Source: Sminthopsis crassicaudata | Lineage: Eukaryota | Direction of reading: 5' to 3' | DNA: 64,000 bases | Assembly (NCBI RefSeq): GCF_048593235.1 | Contig: NC_133618.1 | Location: 683,190,361 to 683,254,360, forward strand | Shown: piece after piece, positions 6,508 to 61,683 of the stretch | Layout: each line of letters starts with the position of its first letter | Position numbering within the stretch: the stretch's first letter is position 1 | Notes under the pieces: model-generated | Told to the model about the DNA's origin: nothing | The model's input: only the letters and a program-made list of their open reading frames with translations | Database searches by the model: none | Made by a program: the position numbers and the translations under genes

Positions 6508-9500
6508 GAGAGACCCAAACACGGATAGAACAGAGGCCGAAACACGGATAGAACAGAGACCCAGACACGGATAGAACAGAGACCCAAACGCAGATAGAAC
6601 AGATACAGAAACGGGGATAGAACAGAGGCCGAAACACGGATAGAACAGAGGCCGAAACACGGATAGAACAGAGACCCAGACACGGATAGAACAGAGACCC
6701 AAACGCAGATAGAACAGATACAGAAACGGGGATAGAACAGAGGCCGAAACACGGATAGAACAGAGACCCAGACACGGGTAGAACAGAGGCCGAAACACGG
6801 ATAGAACAGAGACCCAAACACGGGTAGAACAGAGGCCGAAACACGGATAGAACAGAGACCCAAACACGGGTAGAACAGAGACCCAGACACGGATAGAACA
6901 GAGGCCGAAACACGGATGGAACAGAGACCCAGACACGGATAGAACAGAGGCCGAAACACGGATAGAACAGAGACCCAGACACGGGTAGAACAGAGGCCGA
7001 AACACGGATAGAACAGAGACCCAAACACGGGTAGAACAGAGACCCAGACACGGATAGAACAGAGGCCGAAACACGGATGGAACAGAGACCCAGACACGGA
7101 TAGAACAGAGGCCGAAACACGGATAGAACAGAGACCCAAACGCGGATAGAACAGAGACCAGAACACGGATAGAACAGAGACCCAAACGCAGATAGAACAG
7201 ATACAGAAACGGGGATAGAACAGAGGCCGAAACACGGATAGAACAGAGGCCGAAACACGGATAGAACAGAGACCCAGACACGGATAGAACAGAGACCCAA
7301 ACGCAGATAGAACAGATACAGAAACGGGGATAGAACAGAGGCCGAAACACGGATAGAACAGAGACCCAGACACGGGTAGAACAGAGGCCGAAACACGGAT
7401 AGAACAGAGACCCAAACACGGGTAGAACAGAGGCCGAAACACGGATAGAACAGAGACCCAAACACGGGTAGAACAGAGACCCAGACACGGATAGAACAGA
7501 GGCCGAAACACGGATGGAACAGAGACCCAGACACGGATAGAACAGAGGCCGAAACACGGATAGAACAGAGACCCAGACACGGGTAGAACAGAGGCCGAAA
7601 CACGGATAGAACAGAGACCCAAACACGGGTAGAACAGAGACCCAGACACGGATAGAACAGAGGCCGAAACACGGATGGAACAGAGACCCAGACACGGATA
7701 GAACAGAGACCGGAACACGGATAGAACAGAGACCCAGACACGGATAGAACAGAGACCCAAACACGGATAGAACAGAGACCCAAACGCGGATAGAACAGAG
7801 ACCAGAACACGGATAGAACAGAGGCCGAAACACGGATAGAACAGAGGCCGAAACACGGATAGAACAGAGACCGGAACATGGATAGAACAGAGACCCAAAC
7901 ACGGATAGAACAGAGGCCAAAACACAGATAGAACAGAGACCGGAACATGGATAGAAAGGAGACCCAAACGCGGATAGAACAGAGACCGGAACATGGATAG
8001 AACAGAGACCCAAACGCGGATAGAACAGAGACCGGAACATGGATAGAACAGAGGCCAAAACACAGATAGAACAGAGGCCAAAACACGGATAGAACAGAGA
8101 CTCAAACGCGGATAGAACGGAGACCCAAACACGGATAGAACAGAGACCGGAACATGGATAGAACAGAGACCCAAACACGGATAGAACAGAGACCGGAACA
8201 TGGATAGAGCAGAGACCCAAACACGGATAGAACAGAGACCGAAACACGGATAGAACAGAGGCCGAAACACGGATAGAACAGAGACCCAAACACGGGTAGA
8301 ACAGAGGCCGAAACACGGATAGAACAGAGACCAGAACACGGATAGAACAGAGGCCAAAACACGGATAGAACAGAGACCGGAACATGGATAGAACAGAGAC
8401 CGAAACACGGATAGAACAGAGACCAGAACACGGATAGAACAGAGGCCAAAACACGGATAGAACAGAGACCGGAACATGGATAGAACAGAGGCCAAAACAC
8501 AGATAGAACAGAGACCGGAACATGGATAGAACAGAGGCCAAAACACGGATAGAACAGAGACCGGAACATGGATAGAACAGAGGCCGAAACACGGATAGAA
8601 CAGAGACCCAGACACGGGTAGAACAGAGGCCGAAACACGGATAGAACAGAGACCCAAACACGGGTAGAACAGAGACCCAGACACGGATAGAACAGAGGCC
8701 GAAACACGGATGGAACAGAGACCCAGACACGGATAGAACAGAGACCGGAACACGGATAGAACAGAGACCCAGACACGGATAGAACAGAGACCCAAACACG
8801 GATAGAACAGAGACCCAAACGCGGATAGAACAGAGACCAGAACACGGATAGAACAGAGGCCGAAACACGGATAGAACAGAGGCCGAAACACGGATAGAAC
8901 AGAGACCGGAACATGGATAGAACAGAGACCCAAACACGGATAGAACAGAGGCCAAAACACAGATAGAACAGAGACCGGAACATGGATAGAAAGGAGACCC
9001 AAACGCGGATAGAACAGAGACCGGAACATGGATAGAACAGAGACCCAAACGCGGATAGAACAGAGACCGGAACATGGATAGAACAGAGGCCAAAACACAG
9101 ATAGAACAGAGGCCAAAACACGGATAGAACAGAGACTCAAACGCGGATAGAACGGAGACCCAAACACGGATAGAACAGAGACCGGAACATGGATAGAACA
9201 GAGACCCAAACACGGATAGAACAGAGACCGGAACATGGATAGAGCAGAGACCCAAACACGGATAGAACAGAGACCGAAACACGGATAGAACAGAGGCCGA
9301 AACACGGATAGAACAGAGACCCAAACACGGGTAGAACAGAGGCCGAAACACGGATAGAACAGAGACCAGAACACGGATAGAACAGAGGCCAAAACACGGA
9401 TAGAACAGAGACCGGAACATGGATAGAACAGAGACCGAAACACGGATAGAACAGAGACCAGAACACGGATAGAACAGAGGCCAAAACACGGATAGAACAG

Positions 9501-9662
9501 AGACCGGAACATGGATAGAACAGAGGCCAAAACACAGATAGAACAGAGACCGGAACATGGATAGAACAGAGGCCAAAACACGGATAGAACAGAGACCGGA
9601 ACATGGATAGAACAGAGGCCAAAACACGGATAGAACAGATACAGAAACGGGGATAGAACAGA
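6508..9662. repeat. 23-bp minisatellite array (~137 units) with higher-order duplications
   Basis: unit GAACAGAG(A/G)CC(C/G)(A/G)(A/G)ACA(C/T)GGATA; rare variants recur at 598 bp (gacccaaacgcag at 6581/7179 and 6696/7294) and 1035 bp (minus-strand stop variant at 8102/9137). Confidence 0.97.
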
Positions 9663-11085
9663 GAGAGACTGAAACAGATAAACAGAGACCCAGACAAACA
9701 AGAAGGAAGCAGAAGTCCATGAGGCCCCCACTCCTCTCCCTCATTCAATTCCTGCCCTAATCCTAGGGGAGCAAAGCTGGGCCTCTGCAGGCTAGGTGAG
9801 AGGAGCAGGAAGTCGTGGCTCTTGCCTCAGCTTCCTCCCTAGAGCTTAGTCCAGACTGGAAATGAAGGGGCAGTCACCTGTCCAGCCTGCACCTGAACCC
9901 TGGACGTGTCTGGGGGCCTTGCCCTGCTTGGGGGGGGACCCCTTCCATGACGGGACAGCCCCCGGGGGAGGAAGTTTGTTCAGAGATCCAGATCTGCCTC
10001 CTGGCAACCTCCTGTGGCGCCCCCCAAACCCCAGTCAAGAAGAAAACTCTTATGTCTCCTCTGTCCCCCTTCCGTATTCCTGCAGCTCTTCTCCCAGGTC
10101 CACTTCTCCAGGTCCTTTTCCTAACCCCAAGATGGCACCATCTGCGTCCTTCACTGTCCTGTTAACCAGCGCTGGTCCTCTGGGGGGCCCTCTCTCAACA
10201 TCCCCGAAGCCCGATGCTGGGGCCTGGCCAGGGCTGGGTGAACAAGCCCCCTCCCCCAGGACATTCGCCTCTCAGTAAGGCAGAAGGTGACTTCAGGAAC
10301 CACTCTGGACGTTGGGGGAGGGGAGATGGGGAAGTAGAAGGTCTCCCTTGTTTCACAGATGAGAAAATGGGGACCATTCGCCCAAGATCCCCCAAGAGTC
10401 GGGCTGAGCTGGGACTGGAATGATTTCATTTCCCTTTGAGTTTGTGACTCATCCCCCAGGGATCATTTCTGCATGAAAGGAGGTGTGAACTTTTCGAGCC
10501 AAGCCTCCCCCTCCATTTAGAAAGCTAAGAGATCGAAGAGAAGGGAGCACTTTTATCCCGATTCAGTGGATTTTGTCATGGGGGGGGGGGGGGCGTTCAT
10601 GAAGGTAACAGCATGGGCAAGCAGGAATGGGCTGCAATCTGCCTCAAAGGAGGGCACTCCCCCACAGAGGAGGGCGTGACTCCATTGAGAAGACTTTCTG
10701 CTTGTCCCGGTGACCGCTGGGGTCACTTCAGTTCTCCAGGCTGCTGTCCAGCAGGTCAGCCATCCTTCCACCCTTCACATGCACAAATTTGGGGACCCTC
10801 CTGTCTCGGCGCCATCCTCGTCCCGGACAAGAGCGCTCCCTGGCCCCGGGCAGGACCGATGCTCCGCGGGGGCAGCACAAGTTCGGCTCCGTGAGGGCAG
10901 GGCAGTGTTGTTTTGGTCTCAGTATCTAATACAGTAATATTCATTCTAAGAAATATTTCCTGGACCGAACCTCGTGACTCCCAGGCCAATGTGCCCACCC
11001 CAGGGGCAGGGCTGCTCGCATTGACCCCAAGGTCCCTCTGCGGCCGTCCCTCTCGCGTCCCGATGTGCCCCGATTCCTCCCCCAG

Positions 11086-12110: not shown

Positions 12111-12254
12111 GGGGCAGCTAGGGGGCGCAGTGGAGAGAGCACCAGCCTTGAATTCAGGAAGACCCGAGTTCAAATCTGGTCTCAGACACTTAACACTTCC
12201 TAGCTGTGTGACCCTGGGCAAGTCACTTAACCCCAGCCTCAGGGGAAAAAAAAA
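12111..12254 (+). mobile_element. young tRNA-derived CORE-SINE (WSINE1-like)
   Basis: ggggcagctagg head with A/B boxes, A tail, perfect 18-bp TSD aagatttatccccaataa (12093-12110 and 12255-12272). Confidence 0.92.
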
Positions 12255-12424
12255 AAGATTTATCCCCAATAAATGTTTGATTTGTATTTTATAAACCTAC
12301 ATACCCCGAGGCAAGTCAAAATTTCTTGGACAAAAAAGGAGTGTCCCATGGCCAAGGTTCAAGAAGCCTTGATCTAGATTAAAGATTTACACTGTCCCCC
12401 CCTGCCCCCCAAGCCCAAGCACAA

Positions 12425-13160
12425 TGGGCAGGGGTGGGGGCTCCCGGGGCACAGGGGTGGGGGCTCCCGGGACACAGGGGTGGGGGCTCCCGGGATACAG
12501 GGGTGGGGGCTCCTGGGGCACAGGGGTGGGGGCTCCCGGGGCACAGGGGTGGGGGCTCCTGGGATACAGGGGTGGGGGCTCCCGGGGCACAGGGGTGGGG
12601 GCTCCCGGGGCACAGGGGTGGGGGCTCCTGGGATACAGCGGTGGGAGCTCCTGGGGCACAGGGGTGGGGGCTCCCGGGGCACAGGGGTGGGGGCTCCCGG
12701 GACACAGGGGTGGGGGCTCCCGGGGCACAGGGGTGGGGGCTCCTGGGATACAGGGGTGGGGGCTCCCGGGGCACAGGGGTGGGGGCTCCCGGGGCACAGG
12801 GGTGGGGGCTCCTGGGATACAGGGGTGGGGGCTCCTGGGGCACAGGGGTGGGGGCTCCCGGGACACAGGGGTGGGGGCTCCTGGGATACAGGGGTGGGGG
12901 CTCCCGGGGCACAGGGGTGGGGGCTCCTGGGATACAGGGGTGGGGGCTCCCGGGGCACAGGGGTGGGGGCTCCCGGGACACAGGGGTGGGGGCTCCTGGG
13001 ATACAGGGGTGGGGGCTCCCGGGGCACAGGGGTGGGGGCTCCCGGGACACAGGGGTGGGGGCTCCCGGGGCACAGGGGTCGGGGCTCCTGGGATACAGGG
13101 GTGGGGGCTCCCGGGGCACAGGGGTGGGGGCTCCTGGGATACAGGGGTGGGGGCTCCTGG
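12425..13160. repeat. G-rich 23-bp minisatellite (~32 units)
   Basis: unit ACAGGGGTGGGGGCTCC(C/T)GGG(GC/AC/AT); produces periodic ORFs in all frames. Confidence 0.95.
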
Positions 13161-13397
13161 GGGCCCCAGCTGGAGGCATTGCCAAGGGAGCACGCATTTG
13201 CACATTTAGACTTTAAGAATAATAGTTCCTGCTTCCTCTCTAAGTTTGTAAAATGTTAAAATCGTGCAGCCTCTTAAAAAATAAAATGGAATTCAAGGAG
13301 TGGGGTGTTGGAGGAGCGGGTTCTGCAAGTGGCTGGAGATGGGGGGGTTAGCCATTAGTTCTACAGAGGTGAGCTGAGACTGCAGGGGTCAGGAGAG

Positions 13398-13643
13398 TGG
13401 CTGCTGTGGGGTACACTGAGACAGTGGGGGAAGTCGGGGTGCTGTGGGATACACGGAAACAGTGGGGAGAGTTGGGGTGCTGTGGGGTACACCCAGACAG
13501 TGGGGGGAGTCGGGGTGCTGTGGGGTACACCCAGACAGTGGGGGGAGTCGGGGTGCTGTGGGGTACATGGAAACAGTGGGGGAAGTCGGGGTGCTGTGGG
13601 GTACACCGAGACAGTTGGGGGAGTCGGGGTGCTGTGGGGTACA
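13398..13643. repeat. 38-bp minisatellite (~6.5 units)
   Basis: unit tggggggagtcggggtgctgtggggtacacccagacag with variants. Confidence 0.9.
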
Positions 13644-22640: not shown

Positions 22641-23867
22641 TCAGCAGCTCTCGCCCTCGTCCTCCGTCTGGGGCCAGGCTCTGGAGGGGGCGCGCGGCTC
22701 CCGGAGGCGCTGCTGGGCCTCCCAGTCGGCCTTGTCCAGCTCAAACTGGCGCCACTTCTCGGCCAGCTCGCGGTGCTGCTGCTCCAGGGTGACCCTCATC
22801 TGCTCGTGCCGCTGCAGCAGCTGCGCCTCGGACTCCTGCAGCTTCTGCACCTTCTCGCGCAGCTTCAGCTCGAACACCCGCTCCATCTGCGCCTCGAGCT
22901 CCCGCATGCGGGCCGCGTGCTCCTCCCTCTGCGCCCGCGGGCTGACGAGCAGCTGGGCCCGGCTCCGGGGCCGCGTCATGGCGGCCAGCTTGCGGCTGCG
23001 GTAGTTCTCGTAGTGCACGTTGTTGGTGACGTCCTTCAGGTCCTGGGTGTGGGTTCTCATCAGCATGTTTCGGAGGATGGTGAAGTCACAGTGATCGCCG
23101 TTTTCCACCTCGGCCACGCCCCAGGGGTACTTTCTCCCGCGGACCCTTCGCCCGTCGACCTCGACGATGGTGTTGCTCCCGACCACGGCGAGCGGCAGGC
23201 GGTCCTGGATCTTCTTGGCCGGCCTCCTGTCGCCCGCGTCGCCCGTCCCCGGGAACTCGTAGATCTTAATTTGGTGCTCCTGGATCTCCTGCATGATCCG
23301 CTTCTTGAAGCGCTGGCACTCCTCGGGCGTGAGCGTGTCGGCTTTGGCAATAAGGGGGATGACGTTGACCTTGTCGTGCAGGCGCTTCATGAACTCCACG
23401 TCCAGCGGCTTGAGGCCGCGGCCCGAAGGGGACAGGAAGTACAGGCAGCACTGCACCCTGTGGTCCGGCGTCTGCCGCCGGTACACCCGCGACTCGGCGT
23501 TCAGGTAGTCCTCGAACTTGCTGTCGATGTAGTCGAGGACGGGCTGCCAGCAGTTGCTGTTGTCCACCGCGTCCCCGAAGCCGGGCGTGTCCACGATGGT
23601 GAGCAGCAGCTGCCCGCCGCCTTCTTTGCGGAGGACTTTGGCCTGCTCCACCAGGGCGCTCTTTTCACTTCTGCGGGGGGGCCCCGGGGCCTCGGAAGAA
23701 TACAGGTCCGTGAGGAACAACGAGTTGATGAACGTGGACTTGCCCAGGCCGGATTCTCCCACCACCATCAGGGTGAACTCGAAGCCCCTCTTCACCGACT
23801 TTCTGTACACTTGATCCGGGAGATTGGCAAAGCCCACGTAGCCTTGGACGTTCTTCGCTTGAGCCAT
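22641..23867 (-). CDS. SEPTIN7: intronless septin-7-like retrogene, 408 aa
   Basis: single [34 protein letters not shown]...; GGCGCCATGG Kozak context; G1 GESGLGKS, G3 DTPG, G4 AKAD, septin unique element and coiled coil present; no introns, stops or frameshifts. This is a retrocopy, not the parental multi-exon gene. Confidence 0.9.
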
Positions 23868-23869
23868 GG

Positions 23870-24350
23870 CGCCCCCGCCGCCGGCTCCGCGGCCAGCCCA
23901 CTGACCCGCGTCCCCTCGCGGGGGCCCTGTCCATTCTCCGACGCCACGGGCGCCCTGACGCAGCCCAGCCGGCGCCGCGCCCCAGGCGCTCGCTTTCGGG
24001 ACTTCGGGGTTTGCCCGGGCGATTCTTCTTCCGGCAAAGTCTCGGACGAATGGGCTCCTCGGTCCTTTCCTCTGGGCCCGCAAGCTAGGCTGGCGGAGCG
24101 GCGGCCAGTCTTGTTGAGGGGAGGGCCCCGGCTGGCCCGAGACCTCCCGAGGGCGTTTCTGCAGCCGTTGGGGCTCCGGAGATTATTCGCTGCTCTTTCC
24201 TTGCTTGGAGTCGTCTCGTGTGGGGCTCTCCGCTGCCGTTCTTCCCGGACGGTGGCTCTCTCTGGATCCCGAGCCTGGAGGCCGCGGGCGGGAAGTTCCC
24301 TTCGTAAAGGGCCAGGTCCCTAGCACGACTTTGTCAGGTCCCGATTTTAA
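23870..24350. promoter_or_regulatory. CpG-rich 5' region of the septin retrogene
   Basis: dense CpG immediately upstream of the ATG at 23867. Confidence 0.5.
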
Positions 24351-32738: not shown

Positions 32739-35700
32739 TCACTGCACGGGCACCGCCGCCCTGGGCACGGGCATCGGGGCCGCCGCCTTCCGGCTCCTCT
32801 CGGCCGACAGGCGCTCCAGGCGCTCCGTGTAGAAGCCGTTGAAGTCCAGCCTGTGGGGGAAGGGAAGCGTGGGCCCCGCGTGAGACTGGGGGGTTCCCGC
32901 CCCCCCATTCCCCCCCCCACCGGCCGCATCCCAGAAATACTTTGCCTTTGGCACTGGCTCCCCAGAGGAAATGGCAAAGCCAAGGCTGGGGGGGGGGACG
33001 GTGCTGGGGTGTCGCCCGTTTACCACCTTCTCCTGGGGTAGCGCCAAGCCCTGGGGAGAGCCCCTTGTGGGGGAGGGAGGGGAGGCTCCGCAGAGACAGG
33101 GCGAGACAGCCCTATCCCCAGCCCCCGTAGGGGGGCCTGTTTCGGATCCCCTCGCCCTCTCCCCTCCATGACTCCGGGATGGCCTCCGAGAGGGCTCAGT
33201 GGGGGGGGGGGGAGCCGGCCTTTCCCCGGGCCCCCCGCACCTGGAGATGACGCTGACCATGCTGTGCTCGCAGTCGTTGGTGCTGAAGACGCTCAGCTTG
33301 TCCAGGAGGTCCAGCAGGTGCGCCGAGAAGTTCTTGTCGAACTTGGTGATGGTGGCCTCGAAGCCGGAGGTCATCTGCAGCGCGTCCACGTGCTCCGCCA
33401 GGTGCTGGGAGAGCCCGCGTCTGAGCCCCTCCCCCGCTGGGCCTGTCCCCCGACCTCCCCCGCAGTGCCCCGTTCTCTCCCCACAGCCCCCCCTTCGCCC
33501 CCCGGGAGCCGCGGCCGCTACCTTAGTGGCCAGTTTCCTCTTGAGCGCTTCCTCGGCCCGCTCGGCCTCCGTGGGGGGGCCCAGCATGGTGCCGGGCTCG
33601 GCGGGGGGGCGGCCCAGCTCGCCGTCCAGCTTCATGCTCTGGGTGAACCTCTGGGGGGAGAGGCCGGTGAGAGCGGCGGCGGCGGGGCCCGGGGCCCCGC
33701 TCCGAGGCCCCCCCCCCCCCCGTCCCCCCGCCCCCGCTGACCTGCATGCAGTTGGTGAACATGACGCAGACGGACATCAGCTTGGAGAAGACCTTGAGCA
33801 GCTCGGGGTTGGTCAGCATGCAGTCCTTCAGGCAGTTGTCCAGGAAGCTGGTGTGGTGACCCAGCACGTCGTCGATGTTGGAGGCCTGCGGCGAGGGGGG
33901 CGCTCAGGGCGGGGGCAGCTCCCCGGGGGGACGCGGACGCCCTCGGGGTCAGGGACACCCCGCGCTCACCGACTTCAGGTTCTTCTCCAGGATGTGCCAG
34001 GTCGGCTCCATGACCTCGAACATCATGTAGTACTGGATGTTCTGGACGAAGTTCAGCATGCGTTGCCTCAGCGTGAAAGCCCCGGCGAACCTGGGGGCCA
34101 AGAGCACGCCCACAGGAATCCCAAGGTTTCGGCCGCTGTCGGCGTCCCCCGGTCCCCGGATCCCGCCCATTCCCCCGAGGGGGACACCGAGGCAGCCGGT
34201 GAGGGCCAGGCGGGGGCCCTGCAGCTCCCTCCCTCGCGGCACGTACCACTTGGCGCAGTGCAGGGAGAACTGCTTGGCCGTCTTGTTGCTGATCCAGACG
34301 TTGCAGAGCTGCCGCTCCACGTGCTTGCAGTAGAACATGTGGCGGAAGAGCATCTGGTAGCGCGTGAGCGCCTTCCTGGGGCGGAGGGAGGGGGCTGGCG
34401 TGTGTGGAGGGGGGCCTGGCCGCCCAGCTGATGCCAGCGTGGGCCCCCCTCCCTAAGGCCGCCACACGTGGCCACGACACACCCGTGGGCACACGCCTCT
34501 TGCGTCACATACACACACTGCCCCCTACAGCCCCCAGTGGGCCCCGGACGACGTTAGGGGGAAGGAGCGGAGCCCCCTGCTCTGAGAGGCCCCTGGGGGG
34601 GGCTCCCCTACCTGTTGATGATCAGCGACAGCGGCCACTTGACGATGTAGTCGAAGGAAAAGGCCTCAAGGCCGCTCAGAGTCAGCTCCGTGGGGTCGGC
34701 GCTGAGGATCGACTTCTCCTGCTTGGTCTCGATGGCGAGGACGCGCAAGAGCTGCGTGATGAGGTCGTGGGGCATCAGGTCAATCTGGAAGGGGGAGACA
34801 AAGGAGGGGGCTTGGAGCGGGGCCGGCCCTTGGAGCCCCCACGGTGGAGTTCTAGAGGGAGGGCAGTGAGGGCCCCCGGCCCAGGCCCCCACCAGACCTT
34901 GAAGCCTGCAAGTGGCCACCCCGACCTGTGCTCCCGGAGCCTCGGGGCGCCCCCACCTTCAGGTCGTCCTTGAAGGGGTCCGTGTTGGCCGTGCTCATCC
35001 TCAGGGCCAGCTCCAGCAGCGCCTCCAGCCGGGTCGGGATGATGTCGTCCACCGGCTTCTTGAGCTCCTCCTCGGTCAGGTCCATGAAGTGCACGAAGAA
35101 GTCGCCCTGGTCCATGAGGAAGTAGTGCTTGATGGACCTGCGGAGACCCCGGGAGACGCTGCCGAGCCGGCCCCCAAAAGCGGGCTGGAGCTCTGAGGAG
35201 GCGCCGGGACGGGCCACGCCAGGAGGGGGAATCACGTGGAGGGGCACATGGGGGGGGGCCGTGCCGAGAGGGACCAGGAGTGGGGGGCCCACCGGGAGGG
35301 GGCCGTCACCTCAAGTGCGCCACGAGCTCCTTCTCCTCCATCAGGAAGTCCAGCAGCACGCGGCTGGCGTAGTTGAAGGCCTTTTCGATCTGCTCCACGT
35401 AGGCGCGCTCCTTCAGCGTGTAGACGATCTCCTTGGCCACGGGGCACGTCACGTCGTGGCCGCACTCTCGGACCACGTTCAGGTACTTGCCTGGAAGGAG
35501 GGGGCCGGGAGAGACGGTCGCCGAGCCGCGGGGCCCCTCGGGGGCCTCCCCACCCCTCTGCCAGCGGCCCCTCCCTGCCATTCTTGCCCCAGCTCTGCCC
35601 CCTACTCGGGGCAATCGGGGGAGGGGAACAGCCACTAACAGGAGCCTCCAGAGAAGGACGCAGAACTGGAGGCCCTGCCTCGTGACCCGGGCTCCCCCAG

Positions 35701-38700
35701 AGCTCCCCGCGGGGACCATGGCCTGCGCCAGAAGGGCCCTGGGAAGGGGGCGGGGAGACTGAGGGGACGGCGGTGCTGGAACTCTGTCTTCCCAGAAATC
35801 AGCCGGAGTCAGGGTCACTAAACGTCTTTATTCTGGATCTTTTACGGTCAAGGTCAGGGGTTAGGCCTAGCAACCTCACACACACCTTCCTCCCTCAAAC
35901 GCCAGGAGAGAGTGAGCGTGAGCGTCTCACTTCCCCTTCCTCCCCCCCCCCACGTCACTTCCCCCTCTTTGTCCCACCTGGGGAGGGTCCCACTGGCCAC
36001 TAGTCTCCCGTGCTCCGTTACCCAAGTGCTCAGTTCTAGCCCTTTGCACCGGGGAACCAGCTCTACCCTGACTGCAGCGCGTGCGGGGCCCTGAAACAAG
36101 CTGGGGGGGGAAGGAGGGACAGACATGGGGGGAGGGGGAGAGAGGGGAGACAGACAGAAGCCCCCCACCTGTACTGAGGATCTTGTCGGCCATCTTCTGG
36201 AGGAAGGAAGGGATCTGGGGCTGGACCACGGTGTACCGCTGGTCCCAGTACTTGTCGTTGTAGTCCTCCTGGATCTTCTCCTTCTGCAGCTCGTGCTCCT
36301 CCACCATGAACTCGCTGGGCCGGGGGAGAGGAGGGAACGGAGCTCCAGCACAGAGGGGGGGGAGGGGCCTCCCCTCAACAAGCGCCGCCTGGGCCCGGGC
36401 CGGGCCGCACTGACCTGTAGGGGTCGTTGATGATCCCGCGGTAGATCCACTTCTCCAGGATCTCAAAGTAGGGCACGCTGGCCGCCTTGGTCAGGTAGAG
36501 GCAGAGCTCCTGGGCCTGGCTGTCCCCCGTGTAGTTGAAGCTTCGGTCGTGGAGGAGGCTCAGCGTGGCGCCCCCCAGGCACTCCCCTTTGTCCACGGAG
36601 GTGGCTGCGGGCAGGGAAGGGCGCGTCAGCGAGGGAGGCTGCTCCCGGAGCTGGGGTCCCCAGGGGGAACGGCCAGGACCGACAAGGCCCAGAAGCCTGA
36701 CCGGGAAACGGCGGGTCACCGACGGGTCCCTGCGGCCGGAGGTCACGGACGCCCGCCCCCGGCCGCCACGCCGTCGAGCTGCCTCTCGAAGCTTCCCCGG
36801 GGGACCTTCCCACTGAGACTCGGGGAGCCGTCACGCCCCGCTCCCACTGTGCAAGGTGAGGCTCCAGGCATCTCTCCTGACCCCCCGAGTGTCCGTGCCC
36901 GCCCCGCCAAAGGGCCGGGGGAGGCTCACCCAGGGAGGCCAGGATCTCCATGGTGCGCATGGTGGGCTGGATGTAGAACCAGAGCTTCTGCAGGGAGAGC
37001 AGGCCCTGACGCTGCAAGTGCTCCAGCTGAGTGACCAGGATCATGTACTCCTTGACCAGCGTCCGCATGGCGGCCGCCAGGGCGTGATTGACCTGGCCGT
37101 ACTCGAAGGAGGACTTCTCCTCTATGAACCTGCGGGGGAGGCCGGGAGGCTCGGAGGACGGGCTCCTCCCCCCGCCCTCCCTGCCTGGCCGGCCAGAGCG
37201 ATGGGAAGAGCGTGGCCCAGAGGGAACCCGGCTCAGGGCGATCCCAGCCCGGCCAAAGCCCAGCTCCGGAGCGGGAGGAGCCAGCCGGGGGAGACAAGGG
37301 GCCGGGGTGACCGGGAGGAGCGGGGACCCCCGGGGGGCAGGAAGACCAGGCCTCCCCTGAGTCTCGGCCGGGAAGGAGAGGTCAGCGCAGGGAGGCCAGA
37401 GAGGAGCCCGGGCCCAAGAGGCAGGGGGCACTTGGGGGCAAACCACGAGGGGGGGGCCGAGCCCCGGGCACAGCAGGGGTGACCGGAGGGCGTAAAGTCC
37501 CCGACGGCGTCCGCGGCGAGGGGCTCCGCTGCCGTCCCAGGCCCGGCCTGCCTCAGTCTGGCCAGCCGGCCCCGGGGAGGAGAACCAGGCTCCAGGTAAT
37601 GGAGGCTCCCGGGCCGGTCACAACCTGCGGGAAGGAGGCAGGGAGCCCCTCGGAGGGAGGCCGGAGGGTCAAGGCCGACACCCAGGCGCGCACCTGGTCA
37701 CTGTGGAGTAACTTGCGGCCACCGGCAGGATCCGGTTCACCAGCTCCTTCACGGACATGTCCAGGTTGGGGTCCACGAGGAAAGTGCGGCTCTGCCGGCC
37801 GAGCAGCGCCTGCGCCGTGATGTAGCGCCCGTCCACGCCGACCAGCAGGTACAGCAGGTCCTCCACGACCGTGGCCTCCTGGGAGGCCAAGGGCAAGCTG
37901 CCTGCGGGAAAGGGCACGAGCTCCGTCACTTTCCAGCTCCCGAGAGTCGTCGGGCGCCGTCCGGCGGCCTCCCCGGAGGGGTCCCGGCCCGGGGTGGAGG
38001 AGCAGAAGCTGAAGTGGCCAGAGGAGAGCCAGATGGGGTCCCTGGGGGGCTTACAGAGCTCCCCTCACACAGGGAGGAGGAGGGGGAGCCCCTCAGGAGG
38101 ACGCTGCCCAGCAGGAAGGGGAACGGCCGGGCGACCTCCATCCTCCCCAGGAAGGAAACAACATCGGAGTCGCCACAACATCAGAGGCCCTCCCCCGCCC
38201 CCTCTGGCCCGGAGCTCTATTCCACAAAGGGTCCCAGGAGGGGGGAAGGGTGGGGAGTCCCCAGGACCCCCCGGCTCACGGGCCCCCGGGGGGGGGGGGC
38301 GTACCGATGGGAGCGGGCGAGTCCGAGCCGACCCCGGAGCCCACCAAGAAGTCCCCGATCAGGGTGGGCCTCTCGTAGACCCAGGCGGGGAACACGGGCA
38401 GGTGGTGGCCGCAGTTCCTCTTGCTCTGTTTGTCACGGAGCAGCTTCCGCATCAGTTCCTGAGACTGAGAGTTTGGGTTTTTAGTGAGAAAAAAGGGGCT
38501 TTCCCTCGGTGACTCCGGAGGAGGAGAACGGCGGCCGCGATCGCCCACGGGGAGCGAGGAAGGAGCTGGGGCGCCTCCTCTTCCCATCGGGGGGTTCTAG
38601 GCTGCAGCTGCTGTCACCCTCCCGGACCCTCGCTGACCCCTGCTGCCCGAGGTCGGGGAGGGGGCCGCATCCGGGCCTCCGCCAGGACACAGGGCAGAAA

Positions 38701-41045: not shown

Positions 41046-44000
41046 ATGGAGCGGCCCCCGGGGCTGCTGATCCTCCCAGGCCCAGGCTCGGCCTGGCGAT
41101 ATCCTCCGGGTCACCCCCTCCCCCCCAGCTACCCGTGCTTCACCTGGCTGCCGTGGCCACCCCTTCCCGCTTCGTGCCTCCGAGCCCCGAGCCTACGCTG
41201 GGACAGCGACTGTTTGAGGTCACGTGGTTTCAGAGCTGGGCTAGGCTGAGGGGCGGGATCTGGGGCGGGCACTAAAGTGAGATGGGCAGAGTTTGAAGTG
41301 AAACTAAGGCAACGGTGGAGCCTTGGCTTGAGACTTAGGCAGAGAGGCGGGAACTAATCGTTGAGAGACAGGTGGAAAGGAGAGGTCTGTGGTGAGAGAC
41401 AGGCGGAGAGGCGGGGCCTACGGTGAGAGACAGGTGGAGAGGCGAGGTCTGTGGTGAGAGACAGGCAGAGAGGTGGGGCCTACGGTGAGAGACTAGGCGG
41501 AGAGGGGAGGTCTGTGGTGAGAGACAGGCGGAGAGGCGGGGCCTACGGTGAGAGACAGGCAGCGGGGCGGGTTTATGGTGAGAGACAGGTGGAGAGGCGG
41601 GGCCTACCGTGAGAGACAGGCAGCTGGGCGGGTTTATGGTGAGGGACAGGCGGGGAGGCGGGGCCTACGGTGAGAGACAGGCCGCGGGGCGGGTTTATGG
41701 TGAGAGACAGGCAGAGAGGCGGGGCCTACGGTGAGAGACAGGCAGCGGGGCGGGCTTATGGTGAGGAAAAAGCGGGGAGGCGGAGTGTGCGGGCAGACTG
41801 CGGCGAAGAGGCGGGGTTTGCGGGCAGACTGAGGCGGAGAGGCGGGGTCTGCGGCCAGACTGAGGCGGAGAGGCGGGGTTTGCGGGGGGTGGGCAGGGTG
41901 TGGGAGGTAAGAAAAAGGTTCGTCTGAGAAAAAGGTTCGTCATCGTCGCGGTGATCGGGGCTCGGTCCGCATCGCTGGTCGCGCCCTCCTCGGCCCTGCG
42001 CTTTCCAGGATGGGGACCCTACGAGACACTCTGAGCACCCGAAGGTTGTCTCGGCGTCCGCCCGGGGAGGGGAAGCCGCGCGGGGTCCGGCTCCTCGGGC
42101 TCCGCCGCGGCTCGCGGCGGGTCCGCGGAGGGTCTGGGCGATGGGCGGCGGAGGGGCGGCCGATGAGCCGGCGGGCGGCGGGAGGAGACGGGGCTAGCGA
42201 GCGGCTCTCCCCGCAGGGTGCCCGCCTACTGCTGCCACATCGGAGGCTGCGACCGGGTGTTCGACTCCCTGCCGGGCTACGTGCGTCACTACCAGACGCT
42301 GCACCAGAACGCGTGCTCCTTCTGCCGCCGCTCGTTCCCCTCGGACCAGCTGCTGGACATCCACCTCCTGGAGCGCCACGGCACCGTGCCGTCCTCGCCC
42401 ACCCGGGCGGCGGCCGCGCGCGAGCGCCGCCCCATCCCCTTCTACTACCAGTGCCCGGTGTGGGGCTGCACCGACAAGTTCATGAGCCCCGAGGAGCAGA
42501 CGGACCATCTGATCCGCATCCACCACTACCCCGCCCATCTCTGGTTCGACTCGCCCCCCGACAACCAGAGGTAGGGGGGCGGGCGACCCCTGGGGCAGTG
42601 CGCAGAGCAGCCCGGAGACCGTTCGGGGAGCGGGAGAGGAGGGAGGTGGTCGGCTATTATGGGGGATCCGAGGGGGGGAGCGGGAGAGGGTGGGGGCGGG
42701 GAGGACGGGAGGTGGTCGTCCTCGCTGGGATAAATAGGGGGTGGGGTAGCGCAGGGAGGCGGTCGATCATTATTGGGGACGGATGGAGAGCGGAGAAAGG
42801 ACGCCCATCGTTCTGGGGACGGATGGAAGCGGGAGAGGAGGGATGTCGATCATTATCGGACGGACGGGGAAGGGGGAGTGCGGAGAGGAGGGGGAGGCTG
42901 ATCACTGCGGGGATAGATGAGGTGGGGGAAAGAGGAGGGAGGGAGGAGGGGCGGAGGCCGAGCAGAGCCGGAGGGGGCGGGGGCGACGAGGAGAGCGAGG
43001 GGAGGGGGGGTCGATGGGGAGGGGTGGGGGGGAGGGGCGGGGAGGGGCGGCGGACATCCGGGCCCGAGCTCGTTCGGAGGACGCCAGAGGGGCGTCATCG
43101 GTGAGGGGGGGGCTGCAGGGCTCTCACGCCCCAGTCCCTCTCCTCTGCAGTTCCGGCCAGCAGGGCTCTGCATCCTCGGCCTCGGCCTCCGCGGGGTCCG
43201 CCTCCGAGGCTTCTGCTAAGGAATCGGCCTCCGCCTCCGCGTCCGCATCCGCGGCCTCCGCCGCGGCGGCCTCCGCCCCCCAGGGCGCTGGGGTGGGAGG
43301 AGGAGCAGGCGGGGACAGTGGCCAGGAGCCGGAGGAGGCCATGGAGGAGACCGTGGAGGAGGAGGCTGAGGAGGAGCCGGTGGACGAGACTGAGGACGAA
43401 CCGGACGAGGAGCCCATGGGGGAGGAGGACATGGGGGAGGACGAGGAGGACCCCGAGTCGGAGGCTGGCAGCGACCCCGAGCCCCCTGAGGATGACATCT
43501 CCAGCCTCAGGTCAGCCGCCCGGGAGAGCGGAGTGGGACGGCCGGACACTCCCCGGCGGGAAGCCTTCTCACTGTTCCACACCCCCCACCCCGAGCCTGC
43601 GCTAGAGACACACTTAACAAAAGCGCCCACCCAGACGGGGAGGGGCCGCGGCTCCTCCAACCACACCTAGGGAGGGGGCCGGCTCCGGCCAGTAAAGGCA
43701 AACTGAGGCACACGGAGATCCCCCAGCCAGTCTGAGGGAACTTGCCCCCCCCCCCCCTTGGATCTCAGCACACGTTTCCCAGCCTTCCCCCTGCTTGGGG
43801 GCCGACTCTCTGGGGATAAAGCTTAGCTGCATCCGTGCTCAGGGAGGAGAGGGACGGCACCTTGGCCCCGGCTGGCCAGCGGAGGGCGTCTCCATGGCCC
43901 TGGCCGGGCGCTGGGAGGCCGGTGTTCCTTAGAGACCCTGCTTCCCCGCGCTTTCTCAGTGTAGAAGGGGCCCTGGGCAGGCTGAGGGCAAGGGGGGGGG

Positions 44001-58199: not shown

Positions 58200-59380
58200 C
58201 GAGGGACCAGAGGAGAGAGCCTCGGGCACCTACAGGCAAGGGAGCCGCAGGCCCAGTGGTTAGCCCTCTGTGGGAGAGTCCACGGCTGCGCCGGGGCCCG
58301 AGGGGCGAAGGAGAGGAAGAGCCTGGTCCTGAACTCCCTGATGGAGGAAGCGGACCGCCTGAGGGGGAGGGGTGTAGAGCCTTTCGGCCGTGGCCAACGC
58401 CCGGTGACCCGCGTGTGGGCACGGGCCCCGGAGGGGTCTGTTCCTTCTCTGGCTCGTTTTACCGAGGAGGAAACTGAGGGAGGCCTAAGTGAGCAAGTAA
58501 GGTCTGAGTGGAATTGGGACTCCGCCCTTCTCGCCACCTCCCGGGTCCAGCCGCGGCGGCCGAGGGGCAGGGGCTCGGCCGGGAGAAGCGAGGCCGTTCC
58601 ACCCATTCCTCCGCCCAGAAGCCCCACCCCGCCCCCGGGCTCCCAGTCCCCGGCTCGCGTCGCAGTCAGATGCCTTGGGTGGGGAGGGCCGGGGCCCACG
58701 GGATCCGGATTGGTCGGTAGGGGCGGGGTCCGAAGGGGAGGTCGGCCCGCTCCCGCGGCCGAACTGCTCAAACCCGGACGCCGGGCGTGCTTGGCGCAGC
58801 GGGCCTCTGCGGACCCAAGCCATGGAGCCTTCCCGGCCGTCGACGCCAAGCTGGCCGCAGGGCCCTCCCGCCGACGGCAGTCCTCCCGGGGCCGCGGGGG
58901 GCGCCTTCCCCGAGCCCTGGGCTGCGCCCCTGCCGCCGGACCCCACCGCAGCCGCTCCGCGGGAGAGTCCGGGTGAGATGGGCCGGCCGCGCGCCGCCCC
59001 GAGGCTCCGGGGTGGAGACTGCTTGGAGGGGGGCGGCCGCGGCCGGCCCGGGAGCCCCACTCGATCCGAGGATGGGGGGGCGGCCCCGGGAGGCGGCGCA
59101 GTGGCAAAGGTCGCTGTGAGGTCCGCCCCCGCCCGAATCCCGCAGAGGGGGGGAGGCCGGAAAGTGGAGCCGGTCAGTGGCCGGCGCTCGGCCACTGTCC
59201 CAGGAGCCCGCCCGCAAGGGTGACGGCGCTGCTGAGGCGCCTAGCCACAGGAGAAAGCCGCCTCCGGCCCCTGAAGCAGGGGCCGAGCCCGGCCTCCACT
59301 TAGCCGGGGGGCTCCGGGAATGCCGGCTCGGCCCGGAGCAAGAGGACGCTTGCAGAGGGAAGCCCAGCTAGCCCGAGCCC
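58200..59380 (+). promoter_or_regulatory. CpG island promoter of the NANOG-like gene
   Basis: ATTGG (CCAAT box) at 58709-58713, GGGGCGGGG at 58720-58728, about 100 nt upstream of the ATG at 58822. Confidence 0.6.
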
Positions 59381-61683
59381 GGAGCCTTTTAATGGAAGCG
59401 AGGAAGGAGGAAAAGGAAGGCAGAAACAAGGAGGGAGAAGGGAAGGACTAGGGGGGGAGAAAGGAAGGACAAGGGGGGGAGAAAGGAAGGAAGGCAGAAA
59501 CAAGGAGGGAAAGAGGGAAGGAAGGAAGGCAGAAACAAGGGAAGGAGAANNNNNNNNNNNNNNNNNNNNNNNNNNNNNNNNNNNNNNNNNNNNNNNNNNN
59601 NNNNNNNNNNNNNNNNNNNNNNNNNNNNNNNNNNNNNNNNNNNNNNNNNNNNNNNNNNNNNNNNNNNNNNNNNNNNNNNNNNNNNNNNNNNNNNNNNNNN
59701 NNNNNNNNNNNNNNNNNNNNNNNNNNNNNNNNNNNNNNNNNNNNNNNNNNNNNNNNNNNNNNNNNNNNNNNNNNNNNNNNNNNNNGGCGAGGGGTGGGTC
59801 AAGAGTGGGCTCTGTACCCCCCAGCTACTGGGGGGAATCTTAGCCAGTCCCACTTTGGGCCTGTGTGGGGTGTTGGAGGCTTAGAGGATGTGGGCAGGAG
59901 CAGAGTTCTGCCACAGAAGCATCTGTGGTTGGGCTGGACCCCCCCCAACCCTCTTCCCCAGCTAACCTCTGCACCCCAAGGGTTCCCTGCTTTATCACAA
60001 TGGCTCTTTTGCCTTCCTGGGTGGTCCTGTGTTTGACCCAATTTCAGTTAGCCCTGGCCTCTGTCCCTGAGCCCATTTGGAGTTTTCTTAGCAGAGTAAC
60101 TAGAATGTCTGATCACTTCCTTCTCCAGCCCATGTTACAGTTGACATAACTGAGGCAAATGACGGAATGGACTTGTCCGGAGCCTCACAGGCAGCATTTG
60201 AATTCGGGAATATCCTCCCAGGCGCTGCACTCTGCATGATGCCCTTGGCCCACTTCAGGACCCTCTACCTTTAGTCCGGCTGCCTCCCTTCCCTGTGTGG
60301 TGGGAGAGGAGTGTGGAGGCCAGGGCCTTGATCTCTCCCAAGCCCCAAGAGCATTGTGGCTCAGGCCTGCTTCTCTTCCAGGCAAATGGGACGCCGACCA
60401 AACTCCGGGCCTCTCCTCGCTTTCTCCTCCTCCAGCCTTTGCCCCTGCTCCCCAGTCCCTGAACGCGCTTGTTCACCCTCCTGGCTCCTTGAGCAGCCCC
60501 ACGGTCCAGGAGAATAAGGTGGACCAGAGCAAGGCCAAGAAGCAGAAGACCCGGACGACGTTCACAGAGGAACAGCTGAATTTGCTTCGGAGAGACTTTG
60601 CTGTGTCCAAATATATTACCCCGCAGAGGGGACGCTACTTGGCCCAGCTATTGGGACTTAGTTACAAACAGGTGATCAGCCATTGGAGGGGGGTCTGCAC
60701 TGGCCTCCGTGGTGCCGAGAGGCCAGGAGGCCAGGGAAATGGGCTTTCCCCTTCAGTGTGGTCTACTACAGTATGAATGAGATGGGAGGCTGGGGGAGGC
60801 AGGGGTGTCGGGGAGTCTGGCCTAGACGTGGGGAAGGGGCTGCTGTGGGTGACCAGAAGCTGGCTGTCTTCTCCAGGTTAAAACATGGTTTCAGAACCAA
60901 AGACTGAAAACAAAGAGGCCACAGATGGTCCTTGTGTCCTCGCCACATGACCCGAGGCTGCCCCAGGTAAAGAGGCTCCCCCTGGCCTTGGGCTTCCCTG
61001 CGTCCTGGGAGGGGGCGGGGTAGGGCCCCTGTGGGGGTCCATTCCTTCAGGTAACCCATCTCCCCTTCTTTTAGCTGGGACCGGCCATCAGACCACAAGG
61101 CTTCAGGCTCTCCTCTTCATTTCACACGGACCCTGGAAACAATCATCCCGGAAACTATTCAGGATGGAGTGACCGGGGTCCCGAAGGCTGTCTCCCCAAT
61201 TACGGAGAGGCATCCTTCCCTTACCCAGATGGCCCTCCAACACCCCTCCACTACCCGCCAGGGGGCCCCATGAGGCACGCTGGCTGGAGCTGCCCCACGG
61301 GGCCACAGAGCAGTGCGGCGGGGGCCCCCATGGGGCACGCTGGCTGGAGCTGCCCCACGGGGCCACAGAGCAGTGTGGCGGGGGCCCCCATGGGGCACGC
61401 TGGCTGGAGCTGCCCCACGGGGCCACAGAGCAGTGCGGCGGGGGCCCCCATGGGGCACGCTGGCTGGAGCTGCCCCACGGGGTCACAGAGCAGTGCGGCG
61501 GGGCCCCCCATGGAGCACGCTGGCTGGAGCTGCCCCACGGGGCCACAGAGCAGTGCGGCCGCTTGTGGCCCGCTGGGCATGCAGAGGCAACTGGCGCCCC
61601 TCCCCAGCGCCTCTGAAGCCGGCTCTGCTTACAGGCCAGCCCCGGGCGGCAGTGGAGCCATCCTACCCGGTGGGCAAAAGTGA
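58822..61683 (+). CDS. divergent NANOG-family homeobox protein, 379 aa, 4 exons
   Basis: exons 58822-58972 (GCCATGG, 151 nt, phase 1), 60382-60671, 60877-60966, 61075-61683 (1140 nt, open). Homeodomain KQKTRTTFTEEQLNLLRRDFAVSKYITPQRGRYLAQLLGLSYKQ|VKTWFQNQRLKTKRPQ has the NANOG-diagnostic KQKTRT and LSYKQVKTWFQNQR; intron phases 1,0,0 are as in NANOG. Symbol left blank because orthologue versus paralogue is unresolved. Confidence 0.85.
59400..59549. repeat. purine-rich (GAAGG/GGAG) low-complexity repeat flanking a gap
   Basis: recurrent ggaaggcagaaacaagg units; runs into Ns. Confidence 0.8.
59550..59785. other. assembly gap (N run) in intron 1 of the NANOG-like gene
   Basis: 236 N. Confidence 1.
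61261..61560 (+). repeat. coding 60-bp tandem repeat x5 (20-aa unit MGHAGWSCPTGPQSSAAGAP)
   Basis: five near-identical 60-bp units in frame within exon 4. Confidence 0.95.

Follow-up and report, generated by a model that had tools for sequence, protein, structure and literature searches.

A probable orthologue of Tasmanian devil NANOG2 in Sminthopsis crassicaudata, a NANOG paralogue found across marsupials

We analyzed 64,000 nucleotides (nt) of genomic DNA from the marsupial Sminthopsis crassicaudata (NCBI RefSeq assembly GCF_048593235.1, contig NC_133618.1, positions 683,190,361 to 683,254,360 of the forward strand). This whole stretch is called the window and is numbered from its first letter; it carries a homeobox gene at 58822-61683, which an initial annotation made from the letters alone had described as an intact, divergent member of the NANOG family. 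Our results make us fairly confident that this gene is the orthologue, in another dasyurid, of the gene reported as NANOG2 in the Tasmanian devil, and that NANOG2 is a marsupial-wide NANOG paralogue derived by duplication at the DNA level. This confidence covers identity and origin only, and the inferred role of the gene is graded separately below. The initial annotation presented the gene as a novel element, which does not hold because this kind of gene has already been published as devil NANOG2 (PMC3894937). New relative to the 2014 and 2017 papers on the devil gene are the chromosomal position, the spread among marsupials including didelphids, exon 1, the RNA junctions, an estimate of selection, the presence of a separate canonical NANOG, and a repeat and tail change specific to this species.

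The gene lies on the forward strand, and its four coding exons join into 1140 nt encoding 379 amino acids and a stop codon. Exon 1 (58822-58972, 151 nt) is an open frame that starts with the ATG at 58822 and ends in phase 1 at a GT donor. The homeobox starts at 60540 in exon 2 (60382-60671, 290 nt), which encodes homeodomain residues 1-44; residues 45-60 follow at 60877-60924 in exon 3 (60877-60966, 90 nt), and exon 4 (61075-61683, 609 nt) runs to the stop codon at 61681-61683. All three introns read GT..AG in the window with a pyrimidine tract ahead of each acceptor, and Pfam recognizes the homeodomain divided over exons 2 and 3 (44 and 16 residues). The joining of the exons, the intron ends and the Pfam homeodomain bear out the four-exon reading frame of 379 amino acids that had been proposed.

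For the database searches, the exons of the window were used singly and the devil orthologue was used in place of the whole spliced protein. The search with exon 4 returned one protein, a homeobox protein of 294 amino acids from Sarcophilus harrisii (P0001, UniProt A0A7N4V3G6). Exons 2-4 of P0001 are letter-identical to 'SARHA_NANOG2' in File S1 of Scerbo et al. 2014 (PMC3894937). That study described two putative NANOG genes, and only in the devil; the second was a partial prediction, alone on a short unplaced scaffold, which precluded an analysis of synteny, and its origin was left open. The devil gene was taken up again in a later paper (PMC5413911). The homeodomain of devil NANOG2 is identical to that of the window gene at 54 of 60 positions, and the two genes share exon 1, the motifs behind the homeodomain and the junctions. 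They differ in that the devil copy has one repeat unit and a conserved tail, whereas the window copy has five units and a frameshifted tail. A second devil protein (P0137, KAM8980809.1, 311 amino acids) is named 'putative homeobox protein NANOG2' and clusters with canonical NANOG rather than with the NANOG2 of Scerbo et al., so the name has been applied to different genes.

Further members were found in both Australian and American marsupials. The Antechinus flavipes protein (P0052, named 'homeobox protein NANOG-like' by NCBI) is 87% identical to the devil protein and comes from a collinear locus, and the member in the bilby Macrotis lagotis is annotated as 'uncharacterized'. Monodelphis domestica has a member (P0007/P0049) with the automatic names 'VENTX-like' and 'prophet of Pit-1-like', both of which mislead, since its homeodomain falls within the NANOG2 clade. 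A genomic contig from SRR17300728 carries NANOG2 exons 2-4. The devil, Antechinus, bilby and opossum copies all have an uninterrupted reading frame, and spliced contigs of a devil-like organism are described below; the possibility raised initially, that the gene is disabled and unexpressed in related species, is thus not what was found. No non-marsupial protein nearer than ordinary NANOGs was present in an exhaustive search of 1.84 billion representatives. Gracilinanus agilis has a protein named 'homeobox protein NANOG-like' (P0005) whose 288 codons take up exactly 867 nt of genomic sequence, so that the gene is intronless. Its homeodomain is degenerate (WFQQWR, with N51 lost) and its neighbor is a CRAL_TRIO gene; we read it as a putative processed copy of NANOG2.

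Intron 1 (58973-60381) contains a GA-rich simple repeat at about 59380-59549 followed by an assembly gap, a run of N at 59550-59785 that lies entirely within the intron. Because the gap is inside intron 1 and RNA joins exon 1 to exon 2, the reading frame does not depend on it. The Antechinus flavipes locus (L001) is collinear with the window to the left and to the right of the gap, window positions 59279-59549 corresponding to L001 10302-10586 and 59786-60756 to 12209-13165. The left flank of the gap is the GA-rich repeat, and the same Antechinus intron carries about 1.9 kb of repeat, so a long GA-rich repeat accounts for the break in the assembly. An orthologous exon 1 with its ATG is kept in Antechinus (L001 9730-9888, 53% identical) and in the devil protein P0001. 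The NCBI model of Antechinus P0052 places its 5' exon inside intron 1 (L001 10001-10237) and makes exon 2 longer by 100 nt (12689-13078); this 5' end is either an alternative promoter or mis-modelled. A further in-frame acceptor lies at 60436, 54 nt into exon 2 (ctcctcctccag|CC), and coincides with the junction of the devil model P0001. Splicing to this acceptor, a possible alternative 3' splice site, would take out 18 residues.

RNA contigs cover two of the three junctions in this species. An RNA-type contig of run X5 that aligns on 60377-60416 runs upstream into 139 letters of exon 1. Thirty letters of this contig equal window positions 58938-58967, at the end of exon 1, and occur only once in the window; the next exon 1 letters, TCCGG, had been aligned onto the similar intron end TCCAG with one mismatch, so the contig places the junction at 58972|60382. 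The junction 60966|61075 appears in an X5 contig as a skip of 108 nt with GT..AG ends. Two runs of a devil-like second organism also hold spliced contigs, the letters of which encode the devil protein's MGPQTSAAAC and AALLQS exactly. In one of these runs (X20) exon 3 is joined to exon 4 at the same place as in the window, and in the other (X21) the end of exon 1 is joined 54 nt deeper in exon 2, at the position that corresponds to the window acceptor 60436. NANOG2 is transcribed and spliced, with spliced transcripts in two species. In runs X1-X4, labelled 'RNA?', coverage is as even over introns as over exons; these runs were therefore counted as DNA-like and not used as evidence of expression.

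The gene structure closely follows that of canonical NANOG. The coding exons measure 151/290/90/609 nt in the window gene, 169/275/90/402 nt in Antechinus NANOG (L002) and 160/275/90/405 nt in the NANOG of Sminthopsis crassicaudata (L003). In all three genes the intron phases are 1,0,0 and the homeodomain is interrupted at YKQ|VKTWF, between residues 44 and 45. The initial annotation had stated that both the phases and the length of exon 1 match NANOG; the phases do, but in the dasyurid comparison the 151 nt of exon 1 differ from the 169 and 160 nt of NANOG. Because introns are retained at NANOG positions, the window gene arose by duplication of a NANOG-type gene at the DNA level, in agreement with the duplication originally suggested. 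A processed retrocopy or pseudogene is ruled out by the open frame and by three introns, each GT-AG, that sit where those of NANOG do. The DNA-like runs contained no spliced form.

Similarity to NANOG extends beyond the homeodomain, as had been claimed. In a set of 16 sequences, the region behind the homeodomain gave a collinear BLASTP match to dasyurid NANOG with E values of 2e-4 to 3e-4, centered on the motif FH.D..NH.GN...WS.Q ... N.GE.S. The match to eutherian NANOG, on which the claim had been based, was not significant (E 0.6-1.6), and the sauropsid and fish NANOGs of this set gave no match behind the homeodomain, so that the extended similarity is significant only against marsupial NANOG. 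The pentapeptide tryptophan repeat, with W at each fifth residue, is absent from the window gene. Instead there is a unit of 20 amino acids with a single W, present five times in the window gene and once in its relatives, which results in a W every 20 residues. Since an alignment shows only a rudiment of the tryptophan repeat in dasyurid canonical NANOG as well, the repeat is characteristic of eutherians and not of the whole family.

The window gene belongs to the NANOG family and not to VENTX. An exhaustive phmmer search with exon 2 gave 48 matches, which comprise marsupial orthologues, NANOGs of reptiles, birds, salamander and fish, and a few others (engrailed, BarH, LBX and other NK-like domains); no VENTX-type protein was among them. 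Many of the NANOG matches are exon-2 fragments ending in ...YKQ. All named matches in the search with P0001 were NANOG, and a third protein search contained only NANOGs, and no VENTX, among the matches listed (at least 120). Against the PDB, the best single-domain matches of the whole homeodomain were four NANOG entries with 57-64 bits, versus 57 bits for engrailed-2. A homeodomain tree of 60 columns united NANOG and the marsupial clade with support 97/96 against VENTX-type, HHEX-, LBX-, BarH- and En-like domains. Forcing a VENTX clade cost 8.0 log-likelihood units and gave p 0.036 in the approximately unbiased (AU) test, with two vent/ved-like domains of a single bird gene model (P0143) as the only VENTX comparators. 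These results agree with the placement in the NANOG family given at the outset. The bird model, from Mimus melanotis, is a protein of 467 amino acids with two VENTX-type homeodomains and with Atlas features that adjoin the ved and vent1 clusters; annotation has probably fused two tandem VENTX genes in it.

The homeodomain of the window gene is identical to NANOGs at 30-37 of 60 positions and to VENTX-type domains at 23-27. For eutherian NANOG the count is 34 of 60, so that the initial count was reproduced with database-derived sequences. R5, W48, F49, Q50, N51 and R53 are kept. Helix 3 reads WFQNQR, and its Q52 is common to the window gene, mammalian NANOG and one sauropsid NANOG lineage, whereas fish, salamander and VENTX-type rows have R52; the VENTX-type QNRRMK and LSE(V/I)Q are lacking. 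Q50, N51, Q52 and Leu54 had been read correctly in the initial annotation, but the proline that replaces the tryptophan of NANOG is at position 59 and not at 58. Canonical NANOG shares with the window gene QNQR, T47, the LSYKQ|V intron, four exons in phases 1,0,0 and the post-homeodomain motif, and differs from it in M54 and W59 (L54 and P59 in the window gene), in much slower evolution and in lying in another chromosome region.

Could the gene nevertheless be the marsupial orthologue of VENTX, with only the looks of a NANOG? It sits in the TUBGCP2-ZNF511 block, and the human VENTX gene presumably lies between UTF1 and ADAM8 beside TUBGCP2; the automatic opossum names point the same way. VENTX is an NK-like homeobox gene of the wider VENTX/NANOG group, yet the window homeodomain groups with NANOG. 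The tree support, the AU test on the two comparator domains, the low identity to VENTX-type domains, the missing VENTX motifs and the exhaustive search together make VENTX orthology highly improbable. NANOGNB is, like the window gene, a divergent and fast-evolving NANOG-derived homeobox gene of mammals, and was compared by its description only. It adjoins NANOG and has about 20% homeodomain identity to it (PMC5413911), whereas the window gene has about 57% and lies elsewhere.

The location of the gene was part of the initial proposal. Exons of TUBGCP2 lie on the reverse strand at 33952-38064 (Pfam GCP_C_terminal 7e-23 and 3e-16, GCP_N_terminal 3.5e-12 and 2e-6), and a ZNF511-like C2H2 exon lies on the forward strand at 42167-42571 (Pfam zf-C2H2 and DUF7565), about 16 kb upstream of the homeobox gene; the name ZNF511 rests on its position beside TUBGCP2. 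The window gene is therefore downstream of ZNF511 and TUBGCP2 and away from the SLC2A3-AICDA/GDF3 region of NANOG, and it is the one homeobox gene in the 64-kb window. No ADAM8, CALY or similar gene was recognized in the window, where ten further open reading frames have no Pfam match. Over 16 kb surrounding the gene, the window stays collinear with Antechinus chromosome record CM028218.1, at a site some 1.4 Mb short of the end of that record. Antechinus canonical NANOG is on another chromosome record, CM028221.1, and these neighbors and records uphold the original statement that the gene is outside canonical NANOG synteny. Location bears on orthology to NANOG itself and not on membership of the family.

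Antechinus, Sarcophilus and Sminthopsis crassicaudata each have a separately annotated canonical NANOG, and the homeodomain of this protein is the same in all three species. The initial annotation had allowed that the window gene might be the only NANOG of this genome, moved by rearrangement. We found no evidence in support of this; the annotated canonical genes, the separate Antechinus chromosome records and the well separated clades leave it almost no probability. At the level of the family, a relocated sole NANOG is refuted by the separate annotation of canonical NANOG.

In human, ADAM8, TUBGCP2 and ZNF511 form a block (PMC3055250) and VENTX is at 10q26.3 (PMC8911082). We found no paper that ties NANOG to ZNF511 or TUBGCP2. 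Other NANOG duplicates are known from human (NANOGP1/NANOG2), guinea pig, birds, turtles, coelacanth and gar; these copies, tandem or segmental, lie within the SLC2A3-AICDA region and have remained similar in sequence (PMC3894937, PMC5413911). Like the window gene they are DNA-level copies that kept their introns; unlike them, the window gene is dispersed to another region and highly divergent.

In the homeodomain tree, all seven marsupial rows group together (100/100) on a very long stem, and this clade unites American and Australian marsupials. The split between these two groups is dated to about 80 million years ago or more. Since copies exist on both sides of it, NANOG2 is about 80 million years old or older. 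The amniote setting is suggested by Q52, shared, within the set compared, only with amniote NANOGs, by the post-homeodomain region, which matches marsupial NANOG best, and by the 90-nt exon 3; because of these features the gene probably originated within amniotes, on the mammalian or the marsupial stem.

An older origin can also be considered, in which the window gene is a relic of an ancestral VENTX/NANOG tandem, that is, an ancient NANOG-type gene kept only in marsupials near the VENTX neighborhood and not a later copy. Nanog has been proposed to be a tandem duplicate of ventx (Scerbo and Monsoro-Burq, PMC7190326), and the TUBGCP2-ZNF511 block of the window gene is the neighborhood of human VENTX. 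The free tree places the NANOG2 clade outside crown-mammal NANOG (95/95), a placement that the long branches make unsafe, and a tree in which all canonical NANOGs form a clade excluding the window gene, with NANOG2 as their sister, is not rejected by the AU test (p 0.34). Evidence against a relic comes from position 52, where the gene and amniote NANOGs have an uncommon Q (QNQR) but the fish, salamander and VENTX-type domains an R, and from the post-homeodomain region, which is closest to marsupial NANOG and matches no sauropsid or fish NANOG; exon 3 has the same 90 nt as in dasyurid NANOG. No non-marsupial member exists among the representatives searched. We further take the human order to be VENTX-ADAM8-TUBGCP2, with VENTX on the ADAM8 side, which would put the window gene across ZNF511 from it. 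We regard a relic as improbable; if true, it would mark the place where NANOG was born. Duplication of a NANOG-type gene on the mammalian or marsupial stem is the reading we prefer.

Selection was estimated against Antechinus by the method of Nei and Gojobori. For the gene as a whole, the ratio of non-synonymous to synonymous rates (dN/dS) is 0.27; it falls to 0.083 in the homeodomain, with 7 non-synonymous versus 17 synonymous differences, and rises to 0.40 in the rest of the coding sequence. The homeodomain is under purifying selection. The gene was rightly called fast-evolving, given the dN/dS of 0.40 in the flanks and a homeodomain that changes faster than that of canonical NANOG.

Exon 4 differs from that of the relatives in two ways. 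A tandem repeat on the forward strand at 61261-61559 consists of 5.0 copies of 60 nt, 96% alike and in frame, and encodes five units of 20 amino acids with one Trp and one Cys each; a single unit is present in devil, Antechinus and bilby. Short-read contigs into which the units have collapsed reach about 3-5 times the depth of the flanks in runs X2 and X4, not in X1. Further downstream, a deletion of 11 nt relative to Antechinus (61652..61653, forward strand) shifts the frame and leads to an earlier stop. It swaps the tail EPSYP..GP.L..P, conserved in devil, Antechinus and bilby, for 11 unrelated residues, and the letters of the tail now stand in another frame from 61655. Contigs of the DNA-like runs X1, X2 and X4 match the window without gaps at the site of the deletion. 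Both the fivefold repeat and the 11-nt deletion are private to this species.

These changes raise the question of whether the NANOG2 duplicate is losing its function in Sminthopsis crassicaudata while still being transcribed. Besides the frameshifting deletion and the young repeat, such decay would fit the very low RNA evidence and the end branch of the window row, the longest of the three dasyurid copies (0.16 versus 0.01-0.03). It is opposed by the 379-codon frame, open over four exons with the repeat in frame, by the homeodomain dN/dS together with the retention of all DNA-contacting positions, and by the fact that the deletion affects only the last 20 or so residues and that splice sites are intact and used. 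Loss of function is unlikely on this balance, and an intact NANOG2 orthologue remains the preferred reading.

Several observations weigh against this reading and its proposed role. The homeodomain differs at 5-6 of 60 positions between the window gene and Antechinus or devil, compared with 0 in canonical NANOG among the three dasyurids, so some relaxation of constraint in NANOG2 is possible, and the conserved C-terminal tail has been lost in this species. Its expression evidence is thin, amounting to two short contigs with a depth of about 3 in 1 of about 15 RNA-labelled runs available for it. Of the junctions listed in the initial annotation, 58972-60382 and 60966-61075 were seen in RNA, but 60671-60877, between exons 2 and 3, was not; the sole X5 contig there starts within intron 2 at 60810. 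The window's own protein is absent from the protein collection searched, and NANOG2 may be unannotated in this genome. AU tests placing NANOG2 with marsupial, therian, mammalian or eutherian NANOG gave p values of 0.21-0.38 and rejected none of them. No Oct-Sox composite site within two mismatches is present in the window, where 0.97 would be expected by chance.

Among other features of the window is a septin retrogene on the reverse strand (22644-24182) with an open frame of 513 codons, no introns and a Pfam Septin match of E 2.5e-114. A tandem array at 6509-9664 has a unit of 46 nt (also scored as 115 nt) in about 69 copies that are 90% alike; it is strongly AT-skewed and gives rise to very long spurious open reading frames on the reverse strand. 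A GC-rich tandem repeat of 23 nt at 12429-13162 (about 32 copies) is open in all six frames, and another array, with a unit of 38 nt, lies at 13402-13643.

The NANOG2 protein is predicted to be a sequence-specific homeodomain transcription factor, as it keeps R5, W48, F49, Q50, N51, R53 and the unusual Q52 of NANOG. Because these residues are kept, it probably recognizes NANOG-like sites and could act in the early embryo or the germline. The variable C-terminal half may set partner binding or self-association, and both could be altered in this species, where the fivefold 20-residue Trp repeat and the frameshifted tail have remodelled it. We give a role in pluripotency or the germline about an even chance. 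A heritable processed copy in Gracilinanus would lend indirect support to expression of the parent gene in the germline or early embryo, and the spliced RNA of run X5 is a further indirect hint at such a role. In the literature we found no functional study of a second marsupial NANOG, and the papers searched on marsupial pluripotency and induced pluripotent stem cells speak of one NANOG gene only (PMC9604385; bioRxiv 10.1101/2025.11.09.686659).

NANOG belongs to the core factors of pluripotency, a state that is poorly understood in marsupials. A second NANOG-type factor that predates the split between American and Australian marsupials, with a constrained homeodomain and a free-running activation region, is a candidate for a lineage-specific part of this network. 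The location and distribution described here make the question of origin left by the 2014 and 2017 papers testable. The presence of two NANOG genes in dunnart, devil and opossum matters for read mapping, for the design of antibodies and for the knockout of 'NANOG' in these animals.

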